Below are positions 2,383 through 53,600 of a stretch of 64,000 nt of DNA, in pieces. Position numbers and translations under genes: made by a program. The notes beneath the pieces are model-generated. The model was not told the DNA's origin. It saw only the letters and a list, made by a program, of their open reading frames with translations, and ran no database searches. The stretch is from Styela clava (Eukaryota), in NCBI RefSeq assembly GCF_964204865.1, contig NC_135259.1:17670001-17734000 (forward strand), in the 5' to 3' direction. Numbering within the stretch: the first letter of the stretch is position 1; each line of letters starts with the position of its first letter.

Positions 2383-5300
2383 TCAAACAGCTTCTAGTAG
2401 ACAAAGCTTCCTTATGTCACGCACATATGTTGAATTGGATGTGCGCACCTTCACTCGTCTGACAACCCCTTGATCATCGGGGTATGTTTCTTCTACAATT
2501 GCCTTGGGCCAACATCCTCTTGGTGAATTGTCATCGTACACCAGCACAAGATCTCCAACTTGAAAGTTGCGTTGAATATTGAGCCACTTCTGTCGGCACT
2601 GTAATTGGGGAAGATATTCTTTTGTCCAACGCTGCCAAAATAAATCGAGTAATCGTTGAACATGTCTGTATCCTCTTCTATATTCATCCGTTCGAAAGAA
2701 CACATCAGGTGGTAAAGACGGTTCTAATCTGTTTATCAAAATTGAATTGGGAGAAAGGGCATTCAAGTCCTTCGGATCATCACTCAGTGGTGTGAGTGGT
2801 CTATCGTTGAGAATTTCCTCCACTCCTGTAAGAAGAGACCATAATGAGTAGTCATTGAGAGACTGGCCATCCAAAAGAGCTCGGAGAATTCTTTTCACCT
2901 CTCGTACCATTCTTTCCACCACTCCATTTTGGTGACTAGAAAGAGGAGGCGAAAAATGCCATTGTATACCCTTTTGAGATAGAGATGTGTCAATCAGTTT
3001 GGAATTCCATTTGTTGATACCATCTGCAATAGCTTTGCTTCCAGCCACCAAGTTGGATCCATTGTCTGAATATACATGAGCAGGTTTCCCACGTCTAGAT
3101 GTAAACCTGAAGAAAGCTTGCAGGAATGCTGAAGTATCCAAAGATTCCACAACTTCGATATGAATGGCCCTTGTAGCCATGCATGAAAATATACAGCCAT
3201 ATCGTTTATGTTCGCTTCGCCCCAATTTGACTTTCACAGGGCCAAACAGATCAACTGCAGTGTAGAAAAATGGTGGGTTACCTGCAGTAACACGAGAAAA
3301 TGGTAGATCTGCCATCCACTGCTCTCCTACTTTTGCAGAACGTCTGTTGCAAGCAACACAGTCACGAACAACCTTGGCAACAGCAGATTGTCCCTTCAAA
3401 ATCCAATATTTGCCACGAACAGAGGAAAGTGTGTGTAATGTACCAGAATGTCCAGTCATTTCATGATGTTTGGTAATAATCAGTTTTGTCACATGATGGT
3501 ATGGTGGAAGAATAATCGGATGCTTCTGATCAACTGGTAAACCGGAGTTTCGAAGTCGTCCACCTACACGCAGGATTCCATCTTGTACAAAAGGGTTGCA
3601 TTTGAGAAGTGTTTTCGAAAATTGTGTTTTGAGATTCTTTTAGTTCTGTATATTGGATGGTGCCTCGTCTGCACCTGTATTATCTTTGAAATATTTGAGC
3701 TCCTCTGAGAGGGATGATTGTTGTACTAGTTTCATAATTTCTTTGGTGGCGTAATCTAATTCCTCCACAGATAAAAATCCCAAAGTTGGTGAATTGTCAG
3801 AATGTGAGAATTTCCAAGTTGCATATGTACGAAATCGTAGTAGCCATGCAACAGCTCTACGTAGCTTTTCGAATGATGAGTAACGCAATAACAGTTCATG
3901 TAATGGAGAAGAATCTGTGAGATCTTTCATAGGTTCAGTATAATGAACTTTCATCTCCGAAGCAAGTTGTGGGTCGCATGGGACTTCATGAATCCCATCA
4001 TCAACCACGATCCATGCATCTTCACTTCCCCATATAAATTGTGGGCCTTTGAACCAAATACCAGCCTTGTTTAGTTTATCTGGCATTAGACCACGAGAAG
4101 CAATGTCGGCTGGATTCAGCTTAGATTCGACATGGTGCCATTGATGTGGTTTTGACAAGAGATGAATTGTGTTTATTCTGTTGGCCACAAATGTCTTGAA
4201 GCGTTCAGAACGATTATTGATCATCTGGATAACTGACATGGAATCTGACCAATATATAACACCGTCAACTGTATGGTCCAGTTCTTGTAAAATTGAATTG
4301 GCAAGCTCAGCAGCCACAACTGCAGCGATGAGTTCCAATCGTGGAATAGTCAGTGGCTGCTTAGGAGTTACTCTAGCGACTCCCCTGACAAAGGAACAAT
4401 GAACTTCAACTTTGTCGCCAGTAAGTCGTAAGTAAGCTGATGCTCCATAGCCAGATGTGCTGCCATCACAAAAACAATGTAATTGGATATTGTTGCTTTT
4501 GAACTCTTGTGGTTTGTAACATCGAGGGTTCGCCAGGCCATTCAATGCATGTAATTTATCGATTCATTTTTCCCAACGGTCCTTTAGTAAACCAGTAATG
4601 GGGTCATCCCATGAGTATCCTTCAATACAAAGATCCTGCAGAATTCGCTTGGCAGGTAAGATGAATGGTTGAACAAAACCCAAAGGATCAAAGATTTGAC
4701 TCACCATTGAAAGAATGCTATTTCGAGTGAGCGCCTTTGGTTCAATGTTGACGTATACTACAGATTCATCAGTGTGCATGTTCCATTGTACACCTAGGGT
4801 GCGACTGAGTGAATTACTTTCAAGATTGAGGTCTTTGATTGCAGGAGCACGATCACTTTCTGGAACTGATTGCAGAACATTGATATCATTGCTCATAAAT
4901 TTGGTGAGGTGAAATCCTCCAGTTGCCAATAATTCAGTGAGCTGTTTGATTAGTCTTACAGCATCTGATGGATCATCGACAGATTTCAGTCCATCATCGA
5001 CATAAAAATTGCGCATAACTGTGCGTACTGTCATTTCATCTGCATTCGACAGATTGTCTGCGGCTACTTTGTGTAGCGCAAATGTGTCAACAGAAGGTGA
5101 TGAAGTGTTCCCAAAGTTGTGGGACAACATTTTAAAGTCAATAGGAACACTATCCAAATTATGGTCCTTCCACCATAGGAACCGCTGAGCATCTGTGTCC
5201 TCAGGTGAAACTTTAATTCTGTGGAACATTTCTTTTATGTCACAAACAAATGCAGTCAATTCTTGCCTGAATCGAATGAGCACTCCTGTTAGCATGTTGT

Positions 5301-8300
5301 TCTTGTCAGGACCAGAAAGCAAATTTTTATTCAATGAAGTTCCTTTACACTCAGCAGAACTGTCAAAAACAACTCTAAATTTAGATTGGTGTGTGGCATG
5401 ATGTGGAATGTACTATGTTTTATTTGTGGGTGTGAGTGCATGTGATGGGATTACTTCGGCGTAACCATTCTGAATATAACCCTCAATTTTATCTCTATAT
5501 TTCTGAAATAATTCAGGGTCCCCCATGAATTTACGTTTCAAATACACTAGTCGCTTCTCAGCGATATTACGGTTATAGGGAAGGCTAACAGTGTCTGACT
5601 TCCATGGAAGTCCAATTTGAAACCGACCATCAACCTTGGTCACAGTTTGGTTCATAAAATCAAGTGCCCTTCTATCATCTTGGAATGGCTGAGTAATACA
5701 TGGGTTAGCATTAACATCAGCAAAATCATGAGCACACATATGACAAATAGGTTCATTAAAACTAGAAAAATCAGTAAAATTACAATCAATTGGGTGTATA
5801 GTATTCAAATAATTGACCTCTGCATTGGTCTCTGCAATGCTTACATCTGGGCCAGTAAGGGCCCAACCTAGGATAGTGTGTAATGCAGTGGGGGATCCAG
5901 CTGCACCCACCCGGGTTTCGGTAATTGGGTAACGACCCAGGACATCAGCCCCAATAAGCAAATCGATCGGTTTATCCAATAGGGGAAAATCTAGGTCCCG
6001 TAGGTGAGGATAACGCTGTGTGGCCTCAGTGTTTGGTATCGAATCTCGTACATCAGGTATCGAGTCAAATGTCAAGGCATGGTGAACATCAACGGTCTGG
6101 GGTTCATGGACACCCCTGATAGTAAATGAAACTTTCATGCCATCATGAAGTTTTGGACCAGTGACAGTCCGTATTGTACATCTCTCTGGCTCTCCATTGA
6201 GAGCTAAATCCCTAGCTAATTTAGTGGAACACAAGGATCTAGTTGCCCCATAATCTAGGAAGGCATATGTCAATGACTTATGGTTCGAATCACAAACTTT
6301 CACCTCAACAGGGACAACCATGAGCCTAACAAAACAATCAGTATCACAAAAGTTGACAACATTGGCAAAATAAGAACTTACATTTGTTGAATTGACCTTA
6401 CTATTAGTGTCCGTGGGTATATTTCCGGTCACAGGTGATCGTGGCCTGGTTGGCATTTCATTCTGATGAAGTAGTGTGTGGTGCTTCCGTGTACACCCAT
6501 CAGCTTGGCAACGTTTCTGAGACGGACATTCCTTGACGATGTGTCCGGATCTCATGCAGTTGAAGCATAAATTGTTCTCTCGAATGAAATCACGACGATG
6601 TTGCAGGTCATATTGTTTGAATGTTGCGCAACGATATAAAGGGTGATCGTTCTTGCAACATAAACATAAAGTTTGTGGGTGCTTTTGGCTAGCACCATGG
6701 GCTTGTTGTCTTCCATTGTAATGTGTTGGTTTGTAAGCAGGTGATGAATTCCTCTTCTGTTATGTTGAAGAACTGATTGTAGAATAGGCAGACATTTTCC
6801 CAAAGCGAGATTTAAAATTTTGTACTGCCCTGGGCTTGTTGTCATTTTCTGCCATTAAACGTCCATAAAAATTATTACTGAGATGGGCTCTCAGTTCAAC
6901 AAATTCCAATAAATGAGTGAATGAAGGAATCGGATGATTCTTCCAAGAAGTGTCATGTACATAATCTGCTTGTAATGTTGGTGGTAAACGACGAAATATA
7001 TCTTTGAGATAAGCTTGTGCATCCAGCATTTGTTCAGCTTTCCACTGTGTCAGAATAATAAAACAGTTTCTCATCTGAGACGCAAGTCGACACAGTGCTT
7101 TAGTATCATTGGCTCTTATCCTAGGTCCTTCTGTCAGTTGGCGGATGTGAGCGTCAATGACTAGTGTACGATTTCCAAATCGATACAGTAAGGTGTCTCG
7201 TGCTGCTTGATATCCTTCGCTTGGAGAATCGACAATTACAAGATGCTTAATAGCATCCTTGGCCTCACCAGAGCACATCTGTATAAGTTGAGCTAATTTC
7301 ACCGCAGGTTCATAGGCGTGATGACCAATGATGTTGTCAAATCCACGCATGAATGCATGATAGCTTTTTGGGTCACCATCAAATGTTATGGGGTCAAGTT
7401 TAGGCAGTGTGAAGCCTTGTTTCATGGTGTTTGCCAAAACATACAAATCATCTCTGCTGGGATAATTATGATCCAATTGTTGAGATGGATATTCCGGGAG
7501 TACTGAAGTGTGAGGATCAGGTCTTGAAATTACTGGTGGTAGTGCAGTATTAGGAGGAAGATAGGATCTTGAAGGCGGTGGCATCCAACAGTCATCTCTG
7601 GCCATTGATGACATAATGGGTCGGGTAGGAAAGGTACGAAGGGGCTCAGGATAAGTCACAGGGCAAAAAATTTGTGGGTAGGTAAAAGTTGGTTCACAAA
7701 TAGCAGGATACGAAAATGATGTGCCTATAGATGCCGGCCCTATTGGGGGATATGCAGGTAACGTATTATCATGGTAACTTGATGAGACGGTGGGATATGA
7801 CAAATTCCTTCTTGCAGTTTGGTGAGATAACGCCGGCGTCACAGCAGGCAAATTTTGCAATGGTGCAATATTATAGTGGATAGCTGAAGATACAACTGGT
7901 AAGGTGCCAATGTTAATTCCAATTCTATGAAGCTGTTGGCTCCTACTGATAACAGAAGTCGAATTACACAACGTAAGCTCCGTAATACTAGCAGAAGGCA
8001 TTGTAATAGCCATACCTGTAGAAGTGTCAATTGCTGAGCTGAGAATGTCAGTTATTCCACCTCCTGTTGAAACTTGAACAGAAGGTTGCATGACGTTACA
8101 AGAATATTCCGGAACATAATTTCGCAAATTCAACGCTGGGGGTGGTTCAAACAGTGTTTCGTCAAGAGCTTGTACTTCAATCAATGAACTTCTTGACGAT
8201 TTTGTGCTACTGGATTGTGATAGAATTTTGGCACGTTGCTGCTTATAATACGCTTTATTGATTTTAAGTTGCAGCTGGGCTTCTTCTAATTCTTCAGCTG

Positions 8301-8763
8301 CCTCAAGCTCCAGTAATCTAGCTTTTGTGGAAGAAGTGGTGCTACTAGTCTTTGAGTGCGAATGTTTAGATTTTTTTGTGCTAGCTTGGGACTCATCACT
8401 AGCAAGGCATTCTTGTTGATAATGTCGATATTTCATATTACATGAATTTTTCATATCATTTAGCCGAGTTAAATACTGTGAAGCGTTTTGAATATTCATG
8501 ACATCAGATTCTGTTGTTGCTGAATGCAAAGTAATGTAATTGTTCAAATATTCCTCCCAAGTAGCCACTGCACTATCCAGTCTATCTTTTGCAGCAACTA
8601 CATTTTTTCGATTATTTGGAATATTCATCAGTCTATCAAGACTGGTAAGTAATGTAGTGATGTTCCGATCATGAACGAGTCGAATTGATTCCAGTGTCTG
8701 GATTTCCAATGCTGTGCTGGTGTGAGACACAGCAGATTGAAGAATTTCATCATTTAAAGCCAT
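2383..8763 (-). pseudogene. BEL/Pao gag-pol polyprotein in a single frame with four in-frame stops
   Basis: ORFs 6760-8763, 5413-6555, 4564-5334, 3640-4545 and 2383-3492 share one frame. Motifs: DUF1759-like FDGDPKSY; three knuckles (CLCCKNDHPLYRC, CFNCMRSGHIVKEC, CQADGCTRKHHTLLH); protease AFLDYGAT; RT YVDD; RNase H HCFCDGS/TIPRLEL; integrase HHCC, DLFGP and SDNGSN. Confidence 0.95.
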
Positions 8764-13855: not shown

Positions 13856-14405
13856 AACTCTTAATACTGACCAAAGTATAAAATATAGAATGGTTTTTCT
13901 CTCAACCAAGTTTATTGATACACACGTTCATCCAGAGAAAAATTGACACGTTCATTCGTTTGAATATTTAAACATATAAAGTCATCTACAAGCTATACTA
14001 TAGTGAATTACAAACAAAGATCATATTATACATTTAATTGAAAAAAATGTGCTTATTGCTACAGCAAGAACAGCGTGGACAAATCATTTTAGAATATATA
14101 CCCATTTTGAATCCACGCGACTTCAAGTGTCCATATTTTTGGGCAAAATTTAGTCACAATATGTCTCATATTGAAAGTAGGCAAGTCAGTTTATTGGGGT
14201 TAAAATGATTGGCGTTCAGGTAATTGCAATGACAAAATTTATAAGAAACAACCTTTTTACGACGAAAGCATACATGTGTTAAATATACAATAAGTACCAT
14301 TTAAGTTATGCTAGAATTGAAATTCAAATTTTGTAAAATGTAGATATCGAAGTATAGATTTTACCTAAATTAATTAGTTGTAAATTAAAAAAAAAATTCG
14401 ATCAA

Positions 14406-17177
14406 TTAGTTGTAACTTATCGGTAGATATAGTTGCGACGGCCTTATCGCCATTTCGGTCTGGACGATTTTCCATCCGTTGCAAGCATCCCATGAGACAC
14501 GGTCTGGACCATCTTCGTCAACGACGTCATCTTCCGGCAATGGGAACATTGTAACTCCATATAACTTTCCATTCAAGTTGAAATCAGTGCAGCGATTAAA
14601 CCACCAGCCACCGCCGTAAGATTTTGCGCAATTTCCATCTCTCCACCGGTCGTTGTCACTATCACGTGCCGTGAACTCCATGTCATTGTGCATGGCAGCA
14701 AAATCAACACTTGCTTGATCAGGAGTTGGAGTTATCCTCAGTTTGAAATTTTCCTTTTCGTCACCGATGGAAAATTGGCTGTAAATAAAGGTAATCAAAA
14801 TGTTAAAAGATTATATCAAAATATTTTAACCATAAAATAATTATGAACTGATTATACAATAACTGTACGTATAGCGTCATTGAAAGCCGTTGCAATTTTT
14901 CTAAGTCTGTGACAGAGGTAAATACCGAAAGAACAGTATGCTTCGTTTAAACTGGATTTAAAAAGAGGAAATGAATAAAATTAGCAGTAATCAATAATTT
15001 GAGACCCATGGGACTTAGGTAATACCTCTAGAACAGGGTTGGGAAACTACTTTTCTGCATGGGTCAGTTACAGATAATAGACTTCATTACTGGGTCGGAG
15101 GCTCAGAACTCAATACGAAACTATGAATACAACACTGAATGAAACACTTCGGAGGGTCGGATTCGGCCCACGGGCCGTAACTTGTCCACCCCTGATCTAG
15201 ATTGACAATTGAATTGAGTGAACAGATGTTTTTTCGGTACTCCCGAAGTATGTGAACCAAGATGGCGGACACCGCAACATAGTATGTGTACCAGGTTAGG
15301 GTTAGGCCATAATTTTATTCCAATTTTCCATTACGAGCTCGAGGACTAGTAAAGTGACTACCGTAGTATTTTATACCTCTAATTATGGCCTAACCCTAAC
15401 CTGGTACACATACTACATTTCGGTGTCCGACATCTTGGTTCACATACTTCGGGAGTACCGAAAAGACATAGATTAAGTCGATGTTTAATTAAAAATTGAA
15501 CCACCAAATATCAGCGTTAACTTACTCAAAATAAGTCGTGAATTTTCGTCCATCCGCTAATTTTACAGTGATTCTCAGTTCATGTGGAACAGTACCGGTG
15601 AAATGACGAATTGCTTTCAAACCTAGAAGCAAGATGATAACTTAATTGCATTAAAGTTGATTTATTGTTTTATACCAGTGGTTCCCAATCTTTTTTCTTC
15701 CGTGGCCCATTTTAATTGCACGAAAATTCTGTGACCCATTCACACTTTTTCATGCAAGGGGAATACTACAAGGCAAGCAAAAAACTGTGTCCGCAAAAAT
15801 GAACACTTTAGAATGAAAATTACCGCTCAGTAACATAAAACAGTATTATCGTTCATTGCCACCACAATCAGAATTTGTATTTGAATATAGTGAATCGAAT
15901 TTTCCAACAACTCTTGCAATTTTAAATAGGTTTATGGCGCACCTGGAAGTTTTGCTGTGGGTCATGGCTCACTGGTTGAGAACCGGGGTTTTATTCAGAA
16001 AAATTATAAATTATTGAACAGAACAATTTATAAAATGGATCCTTACCCATCCAATAGTCTCCCGTTGGCATCCCAAATCCACTGATGTAACTTCTCAAAT
16101 CTCTGTCGAACGATTCCATGTCGAGGTATCGGCGCTGGATAATCTGATGGATAATAAATAAATCATATATATATCGTGAAAATTCTGAAGAGTAAAGCAC
16201 ATGGAAGGAAAATACAAACGAAGAAAAAGAGAGGGGGGTTGAAAATCTCTACGAAGTATGACATACCATCCATCCGCCTTCACTTTCTCTACCGCTGCAG
16301 TCACAATAAAGCCATGTTCCTTTTGAATATGCTACACTCGGCTTCTTGTAGTCAAAAAATGCCGTTCTGCCTCGTGTTGCCATTCCAATTGGGTCGTTAT
16401 TAGCATTAGTCGTCTTTGAACAAACGTCCATGCAATCAAGAGGAGCGACTAAAGTTACATATTTATAATAAATTAGCAAAAATCATAAATGTGCACTTTA
16501 TGCCACGACCACTGGCTTTTATGTAGCAAATGGTGTAAAAAAAGCTTGTAGTGTATCTTGGTTCATATCAATATTTTAACATTATTTTAATTCACCACAC
16601 CTGATTTTTTGCATTTTCCTCCTCGGTTGTGTAGAAATGCCATGGAAACACTGCCGTCAGGATTAACTCTGGATTGTGGTGTTACACATCTCAAATCTTT
16701 TTCACAATCTCCCTCCATATTGAAGTCGCCACCGCATGTTTCACCTTTTTGCTTGGCACATCTATTACAGCAGCTGAACAAAATCAAAATATAAGTTTAT
16801 GATTTAAAGAAACACGTACTTTGATGGAGTTTAATGCAATGTTGTTCAAAAAAATTGTTTACAATAGCAAATGTTTTTTTTTTGTCCAAAAAATATATTC
16901 GATTGGGCCAGTTTATATCGCAGGATTCAAATTCTAAAAAACACTCATTATTTCCATAGAAGTATAGAGATGCTGTGTAAATGCGTCAGGAATACACTCA
17001 CGGACAAAGTCCTGGTGCTTCGGATCCGGGGCAGTTTAGTTTTGGACATTCTCTTTTAACTTTAACTTCTATCCCTTCAGGATTGATCATAAGTTCTTCA
17101 CAGGGAAAACAAGTCAGCGTGTTTGCTGAGTGAAAGAAAGTCAAACCAAGCAATATAGTCACTCCGATAAGGTTCAT
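14406..17177 (-). CDS. Secreted IGFBP-N-domain plus fibrinogen C-terminal (FReD) protein, copy A; intact, 365 aa, 6 coding exons
   Basis: Exons: 17177-17002, 16773-16601, 16448-16267, 16143-16047, 15622-15526, 14778-14406. All introns are GT-AG with consistent phases, total 1098 nt. Signal peptide MNLIGVTILLGLTFFHSANT. 12-Cys IGFBP pattern (CFPC...GLCPCCNRCAKQKGETCGG...C...LRC...GKC). FReD motifs: PLDC, YCD, GGWMIIQRR, GFG, DYWMG, HNDMEFTARDSDND, NCA..YGGGWWFNRC..NLNG, EMAIRP. Confidence 0.92.
15033..15194. mobile_element. hAT-Charlie-type MITE in intron 5 of copy A
   Basis: CAGGGTTGG...CCACCCCTG termini flanked by CTCTAGAA and ATCTAGAT, matching the NTCTAGAN target consensus. Confidence 0.75.
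15236..15459. mobile_element. Palindromic MITE, probably Merlin-like; relatives at 18816-19029, 22587-22696, 29681-29891 and 46022-46251
   Basis: Near-perfect TIRs of about 90 bp (GGTACTCCCGAAGTATGTGAACCAAGATG...). Absent from the equivalent intron of copy B. Confidence 0.8.
15676..15988. mobile_element. hAT-type MITE in intron 4 of copy A; a related truncated copy starts at 25121 in intron 5 of copy B
   Basis: CAGTGGTTCCCAA...GGTTGAGAACC termini. Intron 4 is 424 nt in copy A but 99 nt in copy B. Confidence 0.72.
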
Positions 17178-20100
17178 GATGTATGTATTTTTGAACTGTT
17201 AAAATAATAAGCATGGGTTACTCAAAACATGTGGCGGGACAGGCTAGGCAATTTTATTCTATAACTTTCTTCCTAAAGTTTCCAACAATCCTGGTGACGC
17301 TCGTAATTGATTTCCTATCTACCTTGGCGTGTGCAATTGATTATAAACATAACTCATTGTCACTGTTTCCTAGAGCAAGTTTCTTTTGTTCTACAAACAA
17401 CTTTATAAAAGGACAGCATAAATTTAGTAACCACAGTGCTAGTGCGATGTTGCAACTGTGATTGAAGCAGTTTAATCTTGTTCATTTATACACAAATTGT
17501 GTCTTAATTTCTCCCATCTACTTGCGCTTTGTGTACAATTATTGCAAAATATTTGTTAGCCGCAGGTCATGTCTGCTTCGTTGAGCTAAGCTGACATTTA
17601 GCGTATGTTTTAAAAATATACTTGATTCAAATTTATATTTCCAGTTTAAATGTTTTCTGAAAAATATTTTCTATTAATAAGTGGACATATATTTTTTTTT
17701 ACATTTGAGCTACGTCAAGCAAATTAGTCCACTTCACTTCTTCTGTTAATATAAATTCCGGGTAAATACCGAAAAAAATGACGTTGATTAAATGAAAACG
17801 TGAACGAATTTATTTTATTCGTAATAAAAACAATAATAAAATGAAATCGATTGCGAATGGAAACTGGAAGCATTGTGTTCGTGATAGTAATAACTAACTG
17901 CGCTAGTTGGCCCTATCTTTAATTAAGTAAGATAACCGTCCAATCTCAACCTAAAAAATACCACAAGTGAAGCTTTCATATTCGTATATGTGATTAAAAT
18001 TATAGCAAGATTAATCCTTCACCCGTCACTCGATTGCATCAAAAATTAAAATGGAATTGAAGCATCAAAAACAAAATTTTAGCGTGGATTTTAAATCGGA
18101 TTATATTTTCAATAATTTGGAATTAATGAGGGACTCATGCGTGCTAGAATACCTGTATAGCTTCCAGTTATAGTCTATTTATTATACAGATTTAGACTGC
18201 ATTTAAAATTAAAAAAAATGCATTTAACACATTTCTCAGCTAATTAGCGATTTAGTTTTCCAAATTTTAATCAATTCAATGAATATAAAAAAGTGTGACA
18301 GATATGCTATGAAATATGATTTATTTTCAGTGAAGAGAATGCAGATATTGTTTTGCAACTGTTTACGTGCAATGTTATTTATTTCTCCCAAACTACGCCG
18401 TATAGTCATCAATATCAGTCCCTTAGGTGTAATTTGGAATATTTTTGAAACTTGTTTGTTATTTGGAACCGGCAGTTATGACGAAGTAAAAAATTCTTGA
18501 ATCAGGATAAAAAGTTTGCGTCACGATTTTTCTTTGAACAAATCAAATTGTCTACTTAAATACAATAATTTCATTCCAGAACCGGGGATGATTAACAGTC
18601 GTGAAACAGTTGTTTTTGTTTTATTTATTATATTTCCTACTGGTTAAAAACAAAATTTTAAAAGATCAGTGACCAAAAGCACGATAGTATGACGTATGAT
18701 AGTGTTTTTTTAAAATAATTTTAATTTCTATTAAATAAATAATTATTTATACAGAGGATTGATTGGAAAAATGCCCGGAATGACAAACACACCTTTTAGA
18801 GGTCAATGTAGTATTGGTACTCCCGTAGCATGTGTACCGCAGGATAGAGTTAGGCCATAACTTTATTCCGATTTTCCTTATTTTAGTTCTATTACGAGTT
18901 CGGGGACTGTATGTGTTAGCCAAGTGAATATACCCCCTGCCCGTTGGTTTCAGTCCCTTCACACAACTTGATGTAAAGTGGGCGAACAAAATTAGATACC
19001 TCCATATTGGAACACACGCTTCTGGAGCACTGCAATATTTATAACACGATGCATCAATTAACAGAGATTCTTGAGAAAACATTTGTTTACATGAATGAAT
19101 TACATATGATGAAACTTGTGATTGCTTTCTGAAATGTCATAAACCAGATAATGTTGAATAATAATAAACACTTGGTTTGAACTTGAAATTGCGTCATTTA
19201 TTGTTGCTTTGAGCAGGAGTTTATATGAACTTCGATAGTATTTTAAGGCTCAAACGATCCCTCCAAGTAGGGGACTTTTTTAGTTCTATGGAGACGTCAG
19301 AACAAGTTAGTTTTGAATATTTGATTCATAGTTTTCTTCTAGCTTCACGCTTTGGAAGTTACCCATCACTGTGAATTCTGCAGTTACCACAAACTACACA
19401 TCCACCATGTTTGAAAGCACATATATATATACTAATTTTAATATAGTTCATATATACCGACGATATAACAAAAGAACTGGTTACAGAATCAGAAAAGCAG
19501 AATGGACTCACATAAATTATAAAATCTAGATGATCTGGGACAAAAAGCCTGGTAAGCGTTATTCCACTATAGAAAATATGTTACAGCAAGAGGTCCGGCA
19601 CAAAGATCGAGTACATCTTGACCTCGATTCATTAAGTTTAATGTAATTTCCAATAATGCAATGATATTAATTGAAGATATTGGTATGTATTTAAACCAAA
19701 TGCATCGCCCAATATAACTAGCATGCGGTTCAAAATAAGTACACAGACCGCTATAATTGCCTTTGACCTAATGCAAAATTACGCGGAAGAGTTCTCAGTA
19801 ATACGTCTTCAATAGGACATACTAAAATGCGTTCGAATTTGTCAGAGTTGACTTTTAAAAAATCGAGTCTTTCAAACGAAGTTCATGGTAGCGGCAAGCG
19901 GTAAAGATAAATTAGTAGCATTGTCCACGGACGTATTCAAAACACTATATTAGAAGATATTAAACTTTAAATTTTTGCATAATCTTATGAATGCAAACTT
20001 TTATAATGGACACCTGCTACTTTTCATATCGGCATTTTGCTGCAACTACCTTGAAATAGGACGTTTAAACGAAGTTTGAAACTATCTATCTTTTACCAAC

Positions 20101-20250
20101 ATTTTACATCTGTCTTGGCAGTATTTATTCTCAACTAAATCCTGATTCATCCTAAACAGTTCAAAGACGTGTTTTCAAAATATTTATATTAAATAAATTT
20201 GGGTCAATATAAAAACAACATTACTATATGTATATTATAACAATATCATG

Positions 20251-21228
20251 CAGGGTGTTAAAAAATGAACGCCAAATTAACAGAAGTTAAGATGAAATAC
20301 TAATTAGAACATATACCGACTGATACCTTTTTAACTGAATTGAAATACGATGAAATGCCATTCAAACATTTCACGACAGACGCTTTTCAACAGTAACTTT
20401 TTAAACGTTACCATGACGAAAAATTTTACCTTAATTTTGCGTAACTTTTTTTAACAACCTGTGTAATATTGTGGGTGATTGGCAGATATGGTACAAAACG
20501 TCGGATTGCCATTCCGGTCTGCACGATTCTTTACTTTTTAAAACAAGAATCCCATGTGACACAGTCTGGGCCAATTTCATCGTTCATGATCTTTTCCGAT
20601 AGTCGGTAAGTCTCGAATTCCGTATAGCATTATATTCAAGTTGTACTCAAAGTGTGATGTTTTCATGTGACGAACAGAGTTTAGTCTTTTTTAGGTTATT
20701 TATTATAAGTGAGTGCGTGACCTTGCTTTGAGTAGCATTCCAAATACATACCATACATACTTTACCAAATACATATTCGGACTGTAGAGAGGTTTGTGAA
20801 AGTAAGATGAAAGCTCTATTGAATAGATCGCCTTCATTGGAGGGGTAACATACTTGTAAGGCAGAACGATTGAACGATAAGATTGAATATGAACTGAACG
20901 CGTAGAATACAGAATATATATGTATGTGTTCAAGCAAAAAGCAATATCTATTTCTGCCTATTTTAAAAAGCTTTATATGTGCGATGCACTCTTATTCATA
21001 CGGGAGATGAGATTAGCTACAAATGCGCCTACTTAAAAATATACAGGGTGTCCATGAAATCTTGACATTTTGCAAAATCGATACCATAAATCGCTTTGGC
21101 CCTCACAGATGTATTCAATGGAGTAAAAATACTTAAACAATTACTGATTAAAATACAACAAACCTGAATAAAATATATTGGGAACTGACTGCATAACAAA
21201 ATTGTGAAGGGACTTTTTGGACACTCTG
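20251..21228. mobile_element. Two Tc1/mariner-like MITEs (20251-20461 and 21044-21228) in the intergenic spacer
   Basis: Inverted termini CAGGGTGTTAAAAAA...TTTTTTAACAACCTG and TA-CAGGGTGTCCA...TGGACACTCTG. Confidence 0.6.
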
Positions 21229-23624
21229 TTAATATGAAACGAAAGACGATAAATGAGTGAAAATTTAGTTCTCAGTGAGCTGAGCCGTGATGTTTTTATT
21301 GACTGCATTTTAACTCATTTTTTTCACTTTAATACTTTATTATGAAGTTTAATGATTATCAAATAAAAAATATTATGAACAAAAAAAAAATTAACAAAAA
21401 CTGTTTTACGACTGTTAATCATCCCCGATTAAAGAATGAAATTAATTATTGTTTTTTAAGTCAACAATTTGATATTTTCAATAAAAAATTGTGACGCAAA
21501 CTTTTTATTATGAATATTACTTCGTCATAACTGCCGGTTCCAAATAATATACAGTTTCAAAATATTTTAAAATACGCCTAATAAGGGACTAATATTGATG
21601 ACTATACGACGTAGTTTGGGAGAAATGAATTGTACGTAACAATGACGTAAACTGTTGAAAAACAATATCTGCATTATCTTCGTTAAAAAGTATTCATATT
21701 TTATAGTATTTTCATTGAATTGATTAAAATCTGGAAGAATAAATTGCTAAGTGTTGAATGCGTTTTTTAAAAGTAATAAATGCCGACTATCAGATATATC
21801 ATAAATAGACTATAATTAAAAGCCACATAGGCATTCTAGCATATGCATGAATCTCTCATTAATTCTAAATTGTCGAAATGGTAATACGATTTCGAATTCA
21901 TGTTGAAATTTAGTTTTTGATGCTTTAATTATCTTTTAATTTTTGATGCAATCGAGTGACAGGCGGAAGGTAATCCTGACATGATTTCAATCACGTATAC
22001 GAATACGAAAGTTGCTTTCCTTGCGTTGTTTTTTAATTAAGTCAAAATCTTCACTTATTAGAGTACAGAGCCAACTAGCGCAGTCATTCCTATCACGTAC
22101 ATATTTTCGTAGTCGTCATATTTTTCGTAGTTTTATTTTATTTTTTCGGCATCTACCGGGAGTCGGTATAAACGGAAGACACGTAGTAAATTATTGATAG
22201 CCTTGACTACTTGCTGTTAACCTTCCCTAATTTGTATGACGTAGCTCAAGGGTAGAAAAGATTATTCATGATTCACTCAATAATAGAAACGATTTTTCAG
22301 AAGAAAACTTTCAAACTGAAGATTTAAATTTCACTTCGTCATAACTGCCGGTTCCAAATAATGAACAAATTTGAAAAATATTCTCAATGACGTCTAAGGG
22401 ACGGATATGGGAGAAATGAATTGTACGTACGATTGCACTTAAACAGTTGCAAATCAATATCTGCATTATCTTCGTTAAAAATTATCCATATTTTATAGCA
22501 CAACTTTATTATATTCATTGAATTGATTGAAATATGAAAAAAACAAGCTGTTAATTAGCTGAGAAATGTGTTAAATACGTTTTTTTGGTACTCTTGAAGT
22601 ATGCGCACCAAGATGTCGCATAACCTGAAACCTCTCCTGGTACACAACCTGAGTTCAGGTTGTGCGCTATCTTGGTGCGCATACTTCTGGAGGTCCCGTT
22701 TGTTAATAATACCAAATGCGGACTATGTGCTATATCATAAATAGACTGAATTAAAAACTATATAGGCATTTTAGCATACAATGATTAAAAGCTATATAGG
22801 CATTCTAGCATACAATTATATATAATTAAAAGTCGCATAGGCATCTTCGAAGCAATCGACTTACAGACGAAGGGTTAATCTTGACATGATTTTAATCACG
22901 TATACGGAGTGTGCTTCAATTTTGTTAAAAATAGACGGGTGTTTTACTTATTTAAAGATAGGATTAAAAGCCATGGTTTTAATCACGACATCGAATACAA
23001 AAGTTGTTTCCCTGTGATATTTGTCAAGTTAAATTGGACTGGTGTCTTACCTATTTAGATACAGAGTCAATTAGCGCAGTTATTCCTATCACGTACACAA
23101 TGCTTCCAGTTTCAAAGATAAAAAGATTATTTTTGATTCACTTATTATTAGAAACTTTTTTTCTCAAAACTTTCCAACTGGAGATATAAATTTTAATAAA
23201 GTTTATTTTTAAACGATCGACTATTTTCATTTTAGTTCAACAAAGCAAACATGTCTTGCGGCTAATAAATATTTTGCAATAATTGAGTACGAAGGGCAAG
23301 TTGATGAGAGAAATGAAGACACACTTTTTGTATAAATGAACAAGATTAAACTGCTTCAATCACAGTTGCAACATCGCACTAACACTGTGGTTACTAAACT
23401 TATGCTGTTCTTGTATAAAGTTGTTGGTATAACAAAAAGTTGAGTTATAGGTTATGGCTACAACCAATTGCACACGCAAGGATAGATATGATGAATTACG
23501 GGCGTAACAAGGGTTGTTAGAAACAATTGGAAAAAAATTATAGAATATTATTGCCTAGCCCGCCCCGCCATATGTTTTAAGTAACTGATAATTAATTTTT
23601 TAACAGTTTGAAAATACATACATC

Positions 23625-25761
23625 ATGAACATTATCGGAGTGACTATATTGCTTGGTTTGACTTTGTTTCACTCAGCAAACACGCTGCGTTGTCTTCCCT
23701 GTTATCAACTTGTGCTCGATCCTGAGGGAAAAGAAGTTAAAGTTAAAAGAGAATGTCCAAAACTAAACTGCCCCGGAACCGAAGCACCAGACGTTTGTCA
23801 GTAAGTGCATTCCTGACGCATTTATACTACACCTCTACTCTTAAAGGAATAATAAACTTTTTCTTGCGATATAAACAAGGACAAGCGAAAATATTTTTTG
23901 AACAAAAACCGATTTGCTATTGTAAACAGTTTTTATTTTATTTTCATTACATTAGACTTCAGCAAAGTATGTGTTGTCCTAAATTTCAAGCTTTTTTTTG
24001 TTCGATTTTGTTCAGCTGTTGTAATAGATGTGCTAAACAAAAAGATGAAACATGCGGTGGTGACTTCAATATGAATGGAGATTGTGAAAAAGATTTGAGA
24101 TGTGTAACACTACAAACCAGGTACAATCCCGACGGCAGTTTTTTCCTAGCACCTCCAAACAACCGAGGAGGAAAATGCAAAGATTCAGGTTAGATGACAT
24201 AAAATAACGAAATGAACCAAGATACACTACAATTTTTTTTTCACCATTTGCTATATAAAAGTTAGTGGTCGTCGCAAATAATGCACCTTTATGCTTGTTG
24301 CTTATTTATATAAAATTGTAATTTTAGCTGCTCCTCTTGATTGCATGGAAGTTTGTTCAAAGACGACTAATGCCAATAACGACCCAATTGGAATGGCAAC
24401 ACGAGGTAGAACGGCATTTTTTGACTACAAAAAGCCGAGTGAATCCTATTCACAGGGAACGTGGTTTTATTGTGATTGCAGCGATGGAGAAAGTGGAGAT
24501 GGATGATGGATGGTATGTCATACTTCATACAGTTTTTCGACCCTTTCCCGTTTCCTTGTTTGTATTTTTCCTATTATTTGCTTTCTTTTTCACACTTTTC
24601 ACGAGATTCGATTTATTTTTTATCCATCAGGTTATCCAGCGCCATCATCTAGACATGCAAGCATTCGACAGAGATTTGAGAAGTTACATCAATGGATTTG
24701 GGATGCCAACGGCAGACTATTGGATGGGTAAGGATACATTTTATCAATTATGTTATTAATTTATAATACTTCTGTATAGAACAATAAATCAACTTTGATG
24801 CAATTAAATCACCATCTTGCTTTTAGGTTTGAAAGCAATTCGCCATTTCACCAGTACTGTTCCACATGAACTGAGAATCACTATAAAATTAGTGGATGGA
24901 CGACAATTCACGACTTATTTTGAGTAAGTTAACGCTTAATATATAATTTTTCAAAAATAATTGAACATTGAAGTAATTTATGACTTTTTGTGGAAAAAAC
25001 ATCTTTTTATTCAATTCAATTGTCTATCTAAATTCTAGATGTAAAGTCTAATTCACTCTCATTGGTGTCAAATTATTATTTCCTTCTATTTCTAATCATT
25101 CGCTCCCGCTAAATCTAGATCAGGGGTTCTCAACCTTTTTCCTTATGTGGCTCCCTTTCGTTGCACAAAATTTTCATGATTCATTGACTTTTTATGCAAG
25201 CACTACAAAAAAAGCAAACAAATATGCTCGCAAAAATGGACACTTTTATTTCACTAATAAAAATATAATAACCCCTCAGTTGCCACTAAACAATATATTG
25301 TATATCAATTTGGATGAGCATGTATTATTATACAATCAGTTTAGGGATAAGGTATCTTGACGCAATCGTTCAATGTTTTATTTAAATTTATTTACAGCCA
25401 ATTCACCATTGGTGACGAAAAGGAAAACTTCAAACTGAGGGTAACTCCAACTACTGATCAAACAAGTGTTGATTTTGCTGCCATGCACAATGGCATGGAG
25501 TTCACAGCGCGTGATAGTGACAACGACCGCTGGAGGGATGGAAATTGTGCAAAATCGTACGGCGGTGGTTGGTGGTTCAATCGCTGCACTGATTTCAACT
25601 TGAATGGAAAACTCTATGGAATACCAATGTTCATAAAGGACGTCGGTGACGAGGATGGTCCAGACCGTATCACATGGGATGCTTGCAAAGGAAGGAAAAT
25701 CATCCAGACCGAAATGGCGATAAGGCCGTCTCTACGATATCCACCAATCTTATACAACTAA
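23625..25761 (+). pseudogene. IGFBP-N plus FReD gene, copy B; in-frame TGA at 24504-24506 (pseudogene or truncated product)
   Basis: Exons 23625-23800, 24016-24188, 24328-24512, 24631-24727, 24827-24923 and 25398-25761 mirror copy A with all splice sites intact. Exon 3 is 3 nt longer: GGA TGA TGG ATG versus GGA TGG ATG in copy A. Confidence 0.88.
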
Positions 25762-28700
25762 CTTTACTACAATAGTCAAAATCCATACTTGGATATCTAT
25801 ATTTTTACAAAATTTAGGTTTAAAACAAGAATAAGTTAAATGGTTTATTTAAATGTATGCTTTTGTTATAAAAGTGTATTTTTTTACCCATTGTCATTCC
25901 CTGGACGCCCATCATTTTAATCCCAATAAACTACTACTACCAATCATTTACAAATTACTTGAAACGATAATTAAAATCCATACTTCGATATCTACATTTC
26001 ACAAAATTCAAGTTTCAAATTTGAGTATAAGGTAAATGTTGTTAAATGGTATATTTAAAACATGTATGCTTTTGTTGCTATTGTGTATTTTCTTATTATC
26101 GCCATTTCCTGACCGCCGATCATCATTTATTTACCCCCGATAAATTACCTTGCCTACTTTCAAATTGAGACATCTCGTGTCTAATTTTAGCCTAAAAATT
26201 TGAACACTCTAAGGATATATATTCTAAAATGATTTTCGTCCGTTGTCCTTGAATTGTAGCAATACGCAACACTTGTATCAAATGTGGTACAGATGATCTT
26301 TGTTTATAAGTGACTTTAGTATAGCTTTTATAGAATAGATTTTATAGTTTAAACTTTCAATCGAATCGCCCGGAGGCAATTTTTCTCTGTATATCGTGTA
26401 TATCAATAAACTTGAGTATAATATTATTCTATATTTTGTTCTTTGGTCAGTTTTGAGAGTTCTTTCGAATGGATTTCAGATTATATAATAGCACATACCA
26501 TGGTCGGCATTATATTTGATTATCAAAAATACAATTTGGAAGAGAAATAAAACTGGTTTAACTGGCTATTTTAGAATCCAAATAAATGAGTGAACATACA
26601 TCAATCAATTTTACTTTGGTCGCTTTTACATAAAACATAACGATACAAAATAAACTACAAAGTTATTATTCAGAAGTAGGGCTGTCCAAAATCGAATTTT
26701 TTTTTATTTGAATCGAATATTTTCGCCGAATCGAACCGAATATTATTGCGCAATTGTAAATCTGTCTCTATCATACAATAACCGCCTGCCTTACAATGTT
26801 GTAGTAACGTATGTGCAGGTAAATCTCACTTACTGCTGGTATTTTGCAATACTATGTTTTCAGATTTATGAAATGAGATCACATGCTTGTATGAACTGGT
26901 CAAAAAAATGAGAGGACTTCAAAACTAGGGTTTCGAAAACTGTTGAGTGTTGATAGTAAAAATTACACTATTCACAAATTGCATTCTCAATTTTAATGTA
27001 TTCAGTTTTAATAGGTCATGTAAGTAAAGCATGTAGATGCTATTTTAATCCTATCATCACCAGTCTTTTTTTTTTGTGTAATTTTCAGCAAAATGTTAAC
27101 AACCATTAAAATAGATAAACTGTTGCTCAAATTCAAAATTGCATTTAACAAATTTGAAGCTAGTTTGATGACAATATTATTTGATAACTATAATATTGTT
27201 AGTCTACGACAGCCATCAAAATGCAAGAGTGCAATTATTTGTCTTGGTAAATGGATGGATAATACAGTATTGCCATCATACGATATTACAAATTACATTG
27301 AAAGAAGGTATTGCCATCATAAGGATCCCACAATACCTGTTTCTGCTTTGAGTTGCCTGTACCATGTTCCTATGATAACTAACTCAATAGCTTCAAATCG
27401 ATTTTATTTATAGAACTATTGTTTTCTAAGATACTAAATTGCCCTTTTCTCCTTGTTCTCTCTCAAAAACGTCATTGCCGACCATTGTAGAATTTGTGTG
27501 TAGTGGAGCATGTCTCACTGAACCCCGGTTCATTGTTCACCATAGCAAAAAAAAATATTTCAGACCATCCCACGTCGAGATCAGGAAAACACATGTAATC
27601 ACCAACATTATGAATATTTCCCATTGGAGTAGAACTAAAAAATACTATACAGTGGTTTGTTCTCTGGGAAAGCCTGAAGTAGAAAAAAGAAAAAAGATTG
27701 ATATGGCAAGATTTTAGTTTGAACCTTCCGAAACTAGTTTCATCTCATTGCTTGCGTCGCTATGCACTGCCGCTGGCGATTTGCAGGGATGTTGTAACTT
27801 GCCGAAAGGCGGATTCAAATATCGACCGCGAAACTGATTCCGAATATAGCATGAGTGTGAGAGATGTTTTTTCCACTGTGCCTCATGTCCCACCTTCCCC
27901 TACATACGTAGGCTACTTAGCACCCATGCATTTATCAATGTAGAATGAAAATTACTTCTCGCGATTGTACAGTGTTCAGGACAAAGTGAGATGAACAACA
28001 CTAAAATTGCCAGAACCGCTAAAAACAATTATTAGATTAAACGAGGACAAGTCGGTGGAAGCCCAGAATCCCCGCTTATACTTAAGGTGGCCCGAACTCC
28101 AGCAACACGTTATCATCCACGCAAAATTGCACCTAAAACGACGGCGACCCTAGTAGTGTGCCTTCCACCTGAAGTCCGGATTGATATTTGTTTCCATGTC
28201 ATCAGCGAAAAACGCGCCGTCGTTGAGAAATTTCTAGTTTTTTGCCGTTATCTCGTAAACTATCTCAAAAATTGCAATCCCAAGATATCTACCTACGCAG
28301 TAGTGTGAATACTCTTTTTATTCAGCCAATTTTATCTCGGTTATTCATATAAATTAGAAGAAGTGTTAGGAATTTTAGTAAACATGATTAATTATTTGGC
28401 CCGACTGAAGGCGCCGAACGGGTGACAACTACGTCAATTTAGTCCCGTTTCATACAAGTAAATCCCACTTTGCCACGAACAAACCGTGCATAGAATTGCC
28501 TATTTTTCAATACTCTTGGGGGCTTCTATTTAATGCGCTTCGCTGTCGTCCGGAGTGTTACTGGATTTTCCGAGCGTCAGTTTTGTTTGTATGTACATTC
28601 GTCCGATCAAATAGCAAATTCCCCGTTTCTACGCTATCTGCCGAAGTTAGAATGGTTCGCAGCCGTAATCTGACGCGGCAAGTTCCCCACACGAGATTTT

Positions 28701-50694: not shown

Positions 50695-53600
50695 TGTAAA
50701 CCTAAATAGAAACTTTGACTAGAAACTTTATCATTACGCATATGACAAGCAATGCAATGCACCCTGGCGTTGTCCAACTTATATTAACAGTAAACATAGA
50801 AAGCACCGCACAGTGGAACAGTTACAATAAGACTACAAGGATTACCATGGGTGGCGCTATAGGGTTTATTACGTCATATCGTAACATCCCCCTTTTCATA
50901 AAAAGTACTAACACATTAATGTTCACGGCCCGTATCTACCAGGAGTACGAATGATTCTAGTTCGTGTTCTGCGTTGTCTGAAATTCGGAGTTACCGGTCG
51001 CTCACTCGATTCCGTTTCATCTGAACGAGGGGTTTCAGAATTGTTCGCTCTATTTGACGTTAGTTGTGGCTCTGCATGCGAAGATGGTTCTTGTTTTATT
51101 TCCTTCTTGTCATCGTATGTTGGTCTTAAAAAACCCATCTATTTCACATGTAGTCTCTTCCATCGATATTAACGCGATATGACAATTGCTCAGTACGAGC
51201 ACTTTTTGCCCTTTGTGAAGCTTCGAAAGTTGTTTTGTGCCACGATCGTAATATTTCTTAGATCTTGCACGTCTCTGCTCAATTTTCGATTTGACATTTT
51301 TCTCAACTTTCGACGCGAGCAGTTTATTCGATATTGGAAGAAAACATCTTGTGCGACGGCACTTTAGCATTTGACTAGAACTGTCCATACCATCTGTTGG
51401 CGTATTTCTCCATTCGAGTGTAGTTTTTTATACATCTGAACAGTCACTTCGTGCCTTTTTAATCAGATTCTTTGCTTTCTTGACGGCTGATTCGGCTTTA
51501 CCGTTCGACTTGCTATGCAGAATTCCCAACTTCTGGCAAATTCTTGAAATTTAGCATTTGCAAATTGTGGACCATTGTCGGAGATCACTGTATCTGGTTT
51601 GCCATGTCTGCTGAAAATCTTCTTACAGCATCTGATTGCCGATCTCGCAGTTGCGTTATTCAGTTCGTCGAGTTCCCAGAAATCAGTAATTAAATATTGC
51701 TTGTTAAATACAGTAAATAAATCCAGGACTATTTTACATCATGGCTGGTTAAGGATTTCACTGCTTATTAACGGTTCTAGTTGATGGTCTCGTCACGCGC
51801 ATGTTCCATACATACACTACACTGACCAATATAGTCTCGGATTTCTTGGCTCATTCGAGGCCAAAATACTATATCTCGGGCCTTTTTCAAGCACGATTTT
51901 AATACCCATTTGACATTCATGAATGCGTTTAAGCATTTCCGGCCTCATTGTCTTAGGAATTACTATTCTATGGCTTTTGTAAAAAACATTGTTTTGGTAG
52001 CAAAGTTCATCTCTATAATTCAAGAAGTCTTTCAGGCAATCATAGACTTCTCTTTTTGTTTCTGGCCAGCCAACTTTTTTTAAGCATTTGCAATTGCTTA
52101 TAATTCTGAATCTGTTTTGGTCGTTCATCTGTGCAATATGCATAATCGGCAAAATTCATCTTGTTTAATTCATTCCTAAAGTTTTTTCTTCGCTAATTTG
52201 AAAAATTTCAAAACTGTCTTTTGCGGGTTGTAGTATATTATCATTTGTGCACAACCTAGAGAATGTATCTGCTATATGCATTTCTCTTCCAGGCTTGTAC
52301 TGGACTTTTAAATTGTACTTTTGCAGTCTAAGCGGCATTTGCTGTAATCGTTTGGGTGCTGCTAACAAGGATTTCCGAAAAATAGCATCAATCGTTTTTT
52401 GTGATCACTTTTCGACCAAAAATATGATGATCAAATCGTTCGCATCCAAACACGATTGCCAACCATTCTTTTTCAATTTGTGCGTAACGTCGCTCTGTTG
52501 TCGTTAACGAACACGGGGCAAAAGTAACAGGCTTACCTTCTTGTAACAGAGTTGCCCCTAATGCGACTTCACTCGCATCATATTGTAAGGTTACCTCTTT
52601 TGAAATATCATAATATTGAAGAACTGGTGCAGTTGTTGCTAACGTTGTGATATTTTCAAACGCATCATCATGTTCTCTCAGCCATTTCCACTTAACATCT
52701 CTGTACGTCAATCTACGAAGAGGCTCACAAAATTCTGATAGGTGTGAAAGAAATTTAGCAAGATAATTAACAGATCCTACAACACATTCTACCTGTTGTA
52801 CATTTATTGGTTTGGGAATTTTTATAACACCTTGAATCTTCCGTGGATCTGGTAGAAGACCTTTATCAGTAATAAATGACCTAGATATGGAACGGATTTT
52901 AGTTTGAACTTGATTTTACTTTTGTTCAATTTCGAATTTCTGATCCTTGCCCTTTTAAAGACTTTTATTACCTTCTGATCATGATCTCTTACCGCTTTTT
53001 CATATGTTTCCACTTCCAGCAACAAGTATATCATCGGCAATACATCGTATATCTTCGAGACCTTCCAGAACTTCATTCAGTCGCCTCAAAAATTCTTCCG
53101 GAGCTATTGAATTTCCAAACGGCATGCGTTTCCATCTGTATTTAGAAAATGGAGTTATAAAAGTAGTTAAATAGCTACTTTGTTTGTAACGCTTGGTTTG
53201 CCAGAATCCATCTTTCGCATCAAAAACAGAAAAAAACTTTTGCATTAGCTAAATCAGGTAAAACATCTTCTATGTTTGGAATAGGATAATGAGAATGTCT
53301 TAAAGCATTATTTAGGTATTTTGTGTCCAAGCATATCCGCAATTTACCAGTTTTTTTTTAACTGCTACCATATCGCTAATCCAGTCGGTAGGTGTGGTAA
53401 GTATATCAATTAGTAAGTTTTTTCATAAGATCATTGCGCATTGCAAAGGCAATTCTACGAGGTTCATGCTTTACTGGTAGAGCTTTGGTATCTATTTCTA
53501 GATGATAATTCTACGAGGTTGATGCTTTACTGGTAGAGCTTTGGTATCTATTTCTAGATGATATTCTCCCCGAAAACAACCTAGACCTTCAAAAACATCA

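Follow-up and report, generated by a model that had tools for sequence, protein, structure and literature searches.

Proteins carrying a fibrinogen-related domain (FReD) are a main route by which recognition molecules have diversified in invertebrates, and joining the FReD head to a new partner module alters its presentation or its signalling. Snail FREPs and other shuffled FReD proteins, for example, combine the head with N-terminal IgSF, EGF or PAN modules and form clustered, fast-evolving families. Ficolins and tachylectin-5A (TL5A) are soluble FReD proteins, while FIBCD1 is a protein of the plasma membrane (PMC3908420). The cysteine-rich N-terminal domain of insulin-like growth factor (IGF)-binding proteins (IGFBPs; Pfam PF00219) is known from other surroundings: classical IGFBPs carry it together with a linker and a thyroglobulin type-1 C-domain, IGFBP7 carries it with Kazal and Ig domains, and in the single IGFBP-domain proteins (SIBDs) of spiders and crustaceans it stands alone. 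Here, a 64,000-nucleotide stretch of the Styela clava genome (NC_135259.1, positions 17,670,001 to 17,734,000; the window) was analysed. It contains a gene, termed copy A, in which a hydrophobic leader is followed by a 12-Cys IGFBP-N-like module (the N-module), an 8-residue linker and a FReD. The identity, structure, origin and constraint of this gene emerge from the sequence analysis. With a probability of roughly 0.55, copy A is an intact, constrained gene of an S. clava-specific family of secreted two-domain proteins that originated by fusion of an SIBD-like gene, and its product has a soluble recognition or bridging role.

Copy A lies on the minus strand in six exons, from an ATG at 17177 to a stop codon at 14408-14406, and every intron is GT-AG. 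The coding length of 1095 nt corresponds to 365 codons, the length already given in an earlier note made from the letters of this stretch alone (the sequence-only reading), and the intron phases after exons 1-5 are 2, 1, 0, 1 and 2. Exons were searched one by one; the six exon peptides are present exactly and in order in RefSeq XP_077973585.1 (P0269, 365 aa), with starts at residues 1, 60, 118, 178, 211 and 243, and full-length analyses were run on this public protein. The copy A model is identical to this RefSeq entry, whose name, 'angiopoietin-related protein 7-like', reflects FReD similarity only. The sequence-only reading had proposed that splicing yields a leader, a complete 12-Cys module and a FReD, that the two domains join at a phase-1 intron, and that no coiled-coil or collagen linker lies between them. 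The gene model bears out this predicted layout: intron 2 is a phase-1 intron at the domain boundary, with 349 nt of coding sequence ahead of it, and 8 residues separate the final Cys of the N-module from the initial Cys of the FReD. Moreover, IGFBP and Fibrinogen_C are the only domains found by Pfam, with no thyroglobulin type-1 domain, no collagen match and no coiled-coil.

A genome search with exons 6 and 2 showed that copy A and a second copy facing it, copy B, make up one of four head-to-head pairs inside 215 kb of C13, the chromosome that holds the window (17.60-17.82 Mb). All four A-type copies are intact, each with a 365-aa RefSeq model. Three more family genes are carried by another chromosome, C18, namely P0002 (363 aa), the closer relative, and P0152 and P0027 (~37% identical), and all three share the architecture and the phase-1 boundary intron. 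Altogether, 10 loci, and a degraded eleventh (L005), have an IGFBP exon 2 and a FReD last exon ~2-5 kb apart on one strand. On this count the architecture is judged to be real and conserved at about 11 loci of the genome. Divergence was assessed by per-exon Nei-Gojobori estimates of the ratio of nonsynonymous to synonymous change (dN/dS). Between copy A and a C18 gene (L008), dN/dS was 0.20 in the N-module and 0.17 in the FReD, at a dS of ~1, and between A-type copies it was 0.2-0.5. By these estimates both domains are under purifying selection, and the low ratios in both halves at such a distance suggest that selection has maintained the two as parts of a single lineage.

These data bear directly on whether a fused protein exists at all, since gene predictors might have merged an SIBD-like gene with a headless FReD gene that happens to lie beside it. 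Retention of intron 2 in copy A would bring a stop four codons past exon 2, so that a stand-alone SIBD-like product is possible, and half of the copies are pseudogenes. However, exon order, spacing and the phase-1 boundary are the same at about 11 loci, including subfamilies that are ~37% identical. FReD exon 3 lacks both its own start codon and its own leader, and the phase of its acceptor matches. The dN/dS of ~0.2 over a dS of ~1 holds for both halves, and clade-specific FReD features (an extra Cys pair, Thr306 and Arg335) accompany the N-module in every family member. Fortuitous juxtaposition is consequently regarded as highly improbable.

The identity of the FReD is unambiguous. P0269 scores 122.7 bits against Pfam Fibrinogen_C (PF00147), for which the curated cut-off is 22 bits. 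In an AlphaFold2 (AF2) model the predicted local distance difference test (pLDDT) is >85 over most of the FReD, and a Foldseek search with the domain gave target-normalised template-modelling (TM) scores of 0.81-0.87 to ANGPTL2, FIBCD1, M-ficolin and Ang-2. By sequence, the closest solved FReDs are those of angiopoietin-related proteins (E ~1e-25); unlike angiopoietin-like proteins, which are thus the nearest by both sequence and fold, the Styela proteins have no N-terminal coiled-coil. What the Styela proteins share with ficolins, TL5A and FIBCD1 is the fold of the C-terminal FReD, the Asp residues of the calcium site and the disulfide next to it. Using the calcium-site definition of PMC3908420, D281, D283, D285 and the C292-C305 pair do not vary within the family and recur in 20-22 of 23 outgroup FReDs, and the loop of the site is one residue longer than that of ficolin-2. 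The Styela proteins differ from ficolins in having no collagen stalk, and from FIBCD1 in having no membrane anchor.

A further difference from these proteins concerns the S1 acetyl pocket, which in FIBCD1 numbering comprises Tyr405, His415, Tyr431, Ala432 and Trp443/Tyr (PMC3908420). When compared with ficolin, TL5A and FIBCD1, this pocket is largely replaced in the Styela family, the sole retention being the Tyr at Cys+4 in the A, B and P0002 subfamilies. The position of His415, after the second Cys, is occupied by the invariant Thr306, the Gly of the G-I-x-W motif by the invariant Arg335, and the pocket aromatic position (Trp/Tyr) by Cys341 or a gap. The equivalents of Tyr431 and Ala432, which are placed by the motif and by an alignment across an insertion, are less certain. 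In addition, the A-type proteins have an acidic 12-residue loop insert. Cys341 is a seventh FReD Cys that leaves the A, B and P0002 subfamilies with an odd cysteine count, and covalent dimers might form through it.

The N-terminal 117 residues of copy A comprise the leader and the Cys-rich module. The 12 Cys are invariant across nine family proteins, and the module shares its 12-Cys pattern and a CC-x-x-C-…-C-G-G core with spider SIBD-1, crustacean SIBDs and IGFBP7. The IGFBP core motif, GCGCC-x-x-C, is represented by CGCC in P0152 and P0027 and by CPCC or CHCC in the A/B-type proteins; in the A-type, CPCC takes the place of the GCGCC of classical IGFBPs. Against Pfam IGFBP, with a curated cut-off of 28 bits, P0152 scores 33.0 bits, P0027 32.1 bits and the N-terminal product of copy B 28.2 bits. 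In P0152 and P0027 the whole profile is covered, and alignment shows their homology to the copy A module. When a profile of exon-2 peptides was searched against the PDB, the three best matches were to IGFBP7 (E 0.0015) and spider SIBD-1 (E ~0.01). The nearest protein language-model clusters were likewise IGFBP/SIBD, at scores of ~0.8 that serve as leads only. In line with the lack of a coiled-coil, neither of two AF2 models has a helix of at least 4 residues between residues 21 and 117, the mature N-module, the lone helix before residue 120 being in the leader (6-11). Taken together, the sequence comparisons indicate that the N-module is IGFBP-N-like. Its most variable part across the family is the Cys11-Cys12 loop, whose length and sequence change from one subfamily to another and also from A to B; in IGFBPs this loop holds IGF contacts.

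These features are consistent with a model in which the copy A product is a soluble recognition or bridging protein. The FReD would bind a target through its calcium-stabilised P subdomain, without a canonical ficolin-type acetyl pocket, and the IGFBP-type module, standing in place of the usual collagen or coiled-coil stalk, would add a second surface for protein binding, open to a host receptor, an effector or an insulin-like peptide. That the protein is secreted, what it binds and what it does are here predictions from the domains that it contains. The sequence-only reading had been more specific, proposing that recognition of acetylated sugars is coupled to binding of insulin-like peptides. 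This proposal finds no specific support in the sequence, the pocket residues being replaced and the Cys11-Cys12 loop variable.

Six observations weigh against the proposed reading of copy A. First, the copy A protein itself scores 23.2 bits against Pfam IGFBP (E 1.1e-4), below the cut-off, so that the profile match foreseen by the sequence-only reading is found in the copy B product, P0152 and P0027 rather than in copy A. Second, the AF2 fold of the N-module is unreliable, with a pLDDT of ~40 (39.9; P0274, from a 10-sequence alignment) in one model and 40-73 in the other. Third, a canonical ficolin-type acetyl pocket is not conserved and, since its residues are replaced, lectin activity of a known type is not predicted. 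Fourth, no oligomerisation element is evident in the protein. Fifth, all four B-type copies are damaged in this assembly, each differently. Finally, the sequence clusters that hold the family proteins contain NCBI or UniRef records only, with no transcript-derived member.

The same features of the two domains could also be explained if the protein were a matricellular or growth-factor regulator and not an immune lectin, its IGFBP-type module sequestering insulin-like peptides while the FReD docks on a cell-surface or matrix partner. Sequestration of insulin-like peptides has been reported for IGFBP7 and other single-domain IGFBP-related proteins, and angiopoietin-like and tenascin FReDs dock on cell-surface or matrix partners. 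In line with this, the closest solved FReDs by sequence and fold include angiopoietin-related proteins 2, 4 and 6 and Ang-1/2, not ficolins alone; the canonical acetyl pocket is not retained; and IGFBP7 heads the PDB sequence matches of the N-module. Developmental roles are also on record for ascidian FReD proteins, Yamada and colleagues (2009, cited in PMC11988888) having reportedly described a fibrinogen-like protein of the notochord that interacts with Notch. However, the Cys11-Cys12 loop is not constant between subfamilies or between A and B, and a tandem, fast-turnover cluster with pseudogenes would be unusual for a core endocrine regulator. Urochordates are, moreover, reported to possess one conventional IGFBP already (PMC11925022). 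A regulatory role of this kind is therefore considered unlikely, but is taken more seriously than any of the other alternatives to a soluble recognition or bridging protein. There is a slim prospect that the two functions are joined, and that this is a chordate invention coupling an insulin-like-peptide-binding module to a surface-recognition domain, such that growth-factor availability is set locally by the FReD target. If so, that target would be a microbe, the tunic, a gamete or damaged self, and the protein would form a direct molecular link from recognition to insulin-type signalling.

The origin of the N-module can be traced within the same genome. A cluster of two-exon genes, each encoding a leader and a single stand-alone IGFBP-type module, occupies C13:7,520,000-7,645,000 (L011, L012). 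This cluster apparently consists of two copies of a ~72 kb segment, with matches recurring at 71-74 kb offsets, and further loci also hold stand-alone single-IGFBP-domain genes. In the one stand-alone gene examined nucleotide by nucleotide, the intron after exon 1 is in phase 2 and lies directly before the CC motif, as in copy A, and exon 2 has its stop four codons past the last Cys, at the place where copy A has its phase-1 donor. The boundary intron is in phase 1 in every subfamily, even in paralogues that are ~37% identical. The exon shuffling envisaged in the sequence-only reading gains support from the stand-alone genes, with their shared phase-2 intron and their stop four codons past the last Cys.

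Because the N-module shares its two-exon layout with these stand-alone genes, gene fusion is suggested. The SIBD-like genes of this genome are likely to have been the donors of the N-module, and read-through fusion of one of them into FReD exons would be the simplest history. In such a scheme, a two-exon SIBD-like gene would have read through into the FReD exons, the stop codon a few codons past the last Cys being exchanged for a phase-1 splice donor. The fused gene would then have duplicated to give an inverted head-to-head pair, and this pair would have been copied four times, with its B-type members now decaying. The host is a tunicate, and thus belongs to the sister group of vertebrates. 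Since a single genome still shows the likely donor genes together with every stage of duplication and decay, the locus offers a clean natural example of domain shuffling.

Outside S. clava, no protein with this architecture was recovered in the collections searched. A HMMER search with exon 6 against 1.84 billion representatives gave just two hits below 1e-30, both of them S. clava proteins, and the best hit after these is 42% identical. When the nearest FReD representatives were scanned, an IGFBP match was present in 2 of 83, both from Styela, and in none of the other 81; other combinations occur among these nearest relatives, with PAN, Ig, EGF or collagen. A word-indexed search with a full-length family member gave full-length coverage in S. 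clava alone, and the same type of search with the N-module alone returned Styela proteins or nothing, blanks being weak evidence with an index built on shared words. A search of a protein cluster atlas showed no large cluster carrying both domains. The family therefore appears to be restricted to Styela clava in these collections, as expected from the lineage-specific family posited in the sequence-only reading. That the sequence-only reading recognised no characterised IGFBP+FReD protein likewise agrees with the literature searched, which holds no paper on such a protein.

The family proteins are, nevertheless, already public as automatically named RefSeq models, so that the gene does have an annotation, and the precomputed annotation of two paralogues includes both Pfam domains. 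The resemblance to snail FREPs and other shuffled FReD proteins is that of a FReD head joined to a different N-terminal module in clustered, fast-evolving families, whereas the partner module in Styela is IGFBP-N. Compared with stand-alone SIBDs, with IGFBP7 and with classical IGFBPs, with which it shares the PF00219 domain family, the Styela module is fused to a FReD, and the protein has neither the linker nor the thyroglobulin type-1 C-domain of the classical IGFBPs. An IGFBP-type cap replacing the collagen or coiled-coil stalk is an architecture that is not described in the literature searched. The four near-identical intact genes provide a tractable system for the role of an IGFBP-type module outside the IGF axis, and the family is a well-defined candidate, not a discovery of function.

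Copy B occupies 23625-25761 on the plus strand, has the same six-exon layout and faces copy A across 6.4 kb (Table 1). Together with ~1.4 kb upstream of each, the two genes make up an inverted duplication. Its reading frame is closed by a TGA that was created by a 3-nt insertion, and RefSeq models it as two proteins, one of 175 aa ending at the TGA and one of 177 aa starting from a Met in exon 4. In this assembly, copy B does not encode the fusion. Of the head-to-head pair of fusion genes described in the sequence-only reading, the layout and the intact copy A are retained, whereas copy B is interrupted. An interpretation of the TGA as a recoding signal was rejected, as nothing supports it, and the other B-type copies have different lesions: a TGG to TGA change at the neighbouring Trp codon in L004, an exon 1 stop plus a Cys-to-Tyr change in L002, and several stops and a deletion in L005. 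However, an intact 362-aa B-type protein (P0277) was present in an earlier RefSeq release, and for this reason the B-type genes may be polymorphic rather than uniformly dead.

Ascidian self-incompatibility uses the fibrinogen-like egg-coat protein v-Themis, and a clustered, fast-diverging family such as this one could act in a similar self/non-self role, as a gamete or allorecognition ligand. Presence/absence polymorphism, as suggested by an intact P0277 in the older release and broken copies here, would fit such a role, as would the raised dN/dS of 0.87 between A and B in the N-module. Fibrinogen-like ligands are also described in reviews on ascidian fertilisation (PMC9265791, PMC8849226). 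On the other hand, no polycystin-type receptor gene encloses the family genes, the A-type copies are under purifying selection (0.2-0.5), and no hypervariable region was demonstrated. This role is accordingly thought distinctly unlikely, and a soluble recognition or bridging protein is still preferred.

Two other copies of the cluster required separate interpretation. A near-identical copy 48 kb away (L003) could have been an uncollapsed haplotype. It was treated, without proof, as a paralogue because its B-type partner differs more (FReD dS 0.088), because the spacing is 25.6 kb as against 11.0 kb, and because the copies have separate RefSeq proteins. In L005 (C13:17,797,300-17,803,300), most of intron 3 is deleted at ~3060-3064, so that exons 3 and 4 are contiguous, and RefSeq reads through as a 240-aa protein. 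RNA-mediated intron loss was rejected here, since the junction retains intron-end bases, which points to a genomic deletion in a pseudogene.

Table 1. Features of copy A, copy B and the inverted duplication, in window coordinates
Feature	Position	Strand	Remarks
Copy A exon 1: start codon, signal-peptide-like leader, Cys 1-5 of the IGFBP-N-like module	17002..17177	-	Ends in phase 2, directly before the CC motif; RefSeq P0269 residues 1-58 exactly
Copy A exon 2: Cys 6-12 of the IGFBP-N-like module	16601..16773	-	Ends in the phase-1 boundary intron; Pfam IGFBP 20.9 bits with the exon alone
Copy A exon 3: FReD start (A subdomain), 4 Cys	16267..16448	-	
Copy A exon 4: FReD	16047..16143	-	
Copy A exon 5: FReD	15526..15622	-	Covered by no open reading frame (ORF) of at least 40 aa in the ORF list
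Copy A exon 6 and stop: FReD P subdomain, calcium-site Asp, C292-C305 disulfide pair, 12-residue acidic loop insert, extra Cys341	14406..14778	-	Pfam Fibrinogen_C 1.8e-18, 67.6 bits with the exon alone
Copy B exon 1	23625..23800	+	
Copy B exon 2	24016..24188	+	
Copy B exon 3, 3 nt longer than that of copy A	24328..24512	+	
In-frame TGA closing the copy B reading frame, two codons ahead of the exon 3 donor	24504..24506	+	RefSeq P0274 (175 aa) ends exactly there
Copy B exon 4	24631..24727	+	
Copy B exon 5	24827..24923	+	
Copy B exon 6 and stop	25398..25761	+	
Inverted duplication, left arm: copy A and ~1.4 kb upstream	14121..18629		17 arm pairs with the right arm, 77-93% complementary
Inverted duplication, right arm: copy B and upstream region	21381..26213		
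Decayed FReD C-terminal exon (relic), interrupted by a stop, in the A-B spacer	20468..20608	-	tblastn, 51% identity over 47 residues, E 5e-8

Several minor features of the locus were also recorded. Inside intron 5 of copy A, an inverted repeat of 102 nt with a 66-nt spacer (15213-15482, 89% complementary) resembles a miniature transposon insertion, and intron 5 of copy B is 273 nt shorter than that of copy A. Upstream of the ATG by 18 nt, a pyrimidine-rich tract ending in AACAG is kept in both copies (17178-17205; 23597-23624). Spliced-leader trans-splicing is common in tunicates, and this tract could be the acceptor either for such a reaction or for an intron in the 5' untranslated region.

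More widely, the FReD last exon has at least 143 matches in the genome, many of them in tandem clusters (C19 5.3-6.9 Mb; C10 7.9-8.0 Mb; C6 23.1-23.3 Mb; C13 19.7-19.9 Mb), which amounts to a very large FReD repertoire. Elsewhere in the window, positions 2383-8763 (minus strand) hold a Pao/BEL-type long terminal repeat retrotransposon with long open frames, whose Pfam domains are Peptidase_A17, the zinc-binding and core domains of integrase, DUF1759 and DUF5641. At 51817-53818 (minus strand), broken ORFs resemble retrotransposon polymerase/RNase H remnants, as judged by eye from their translations.

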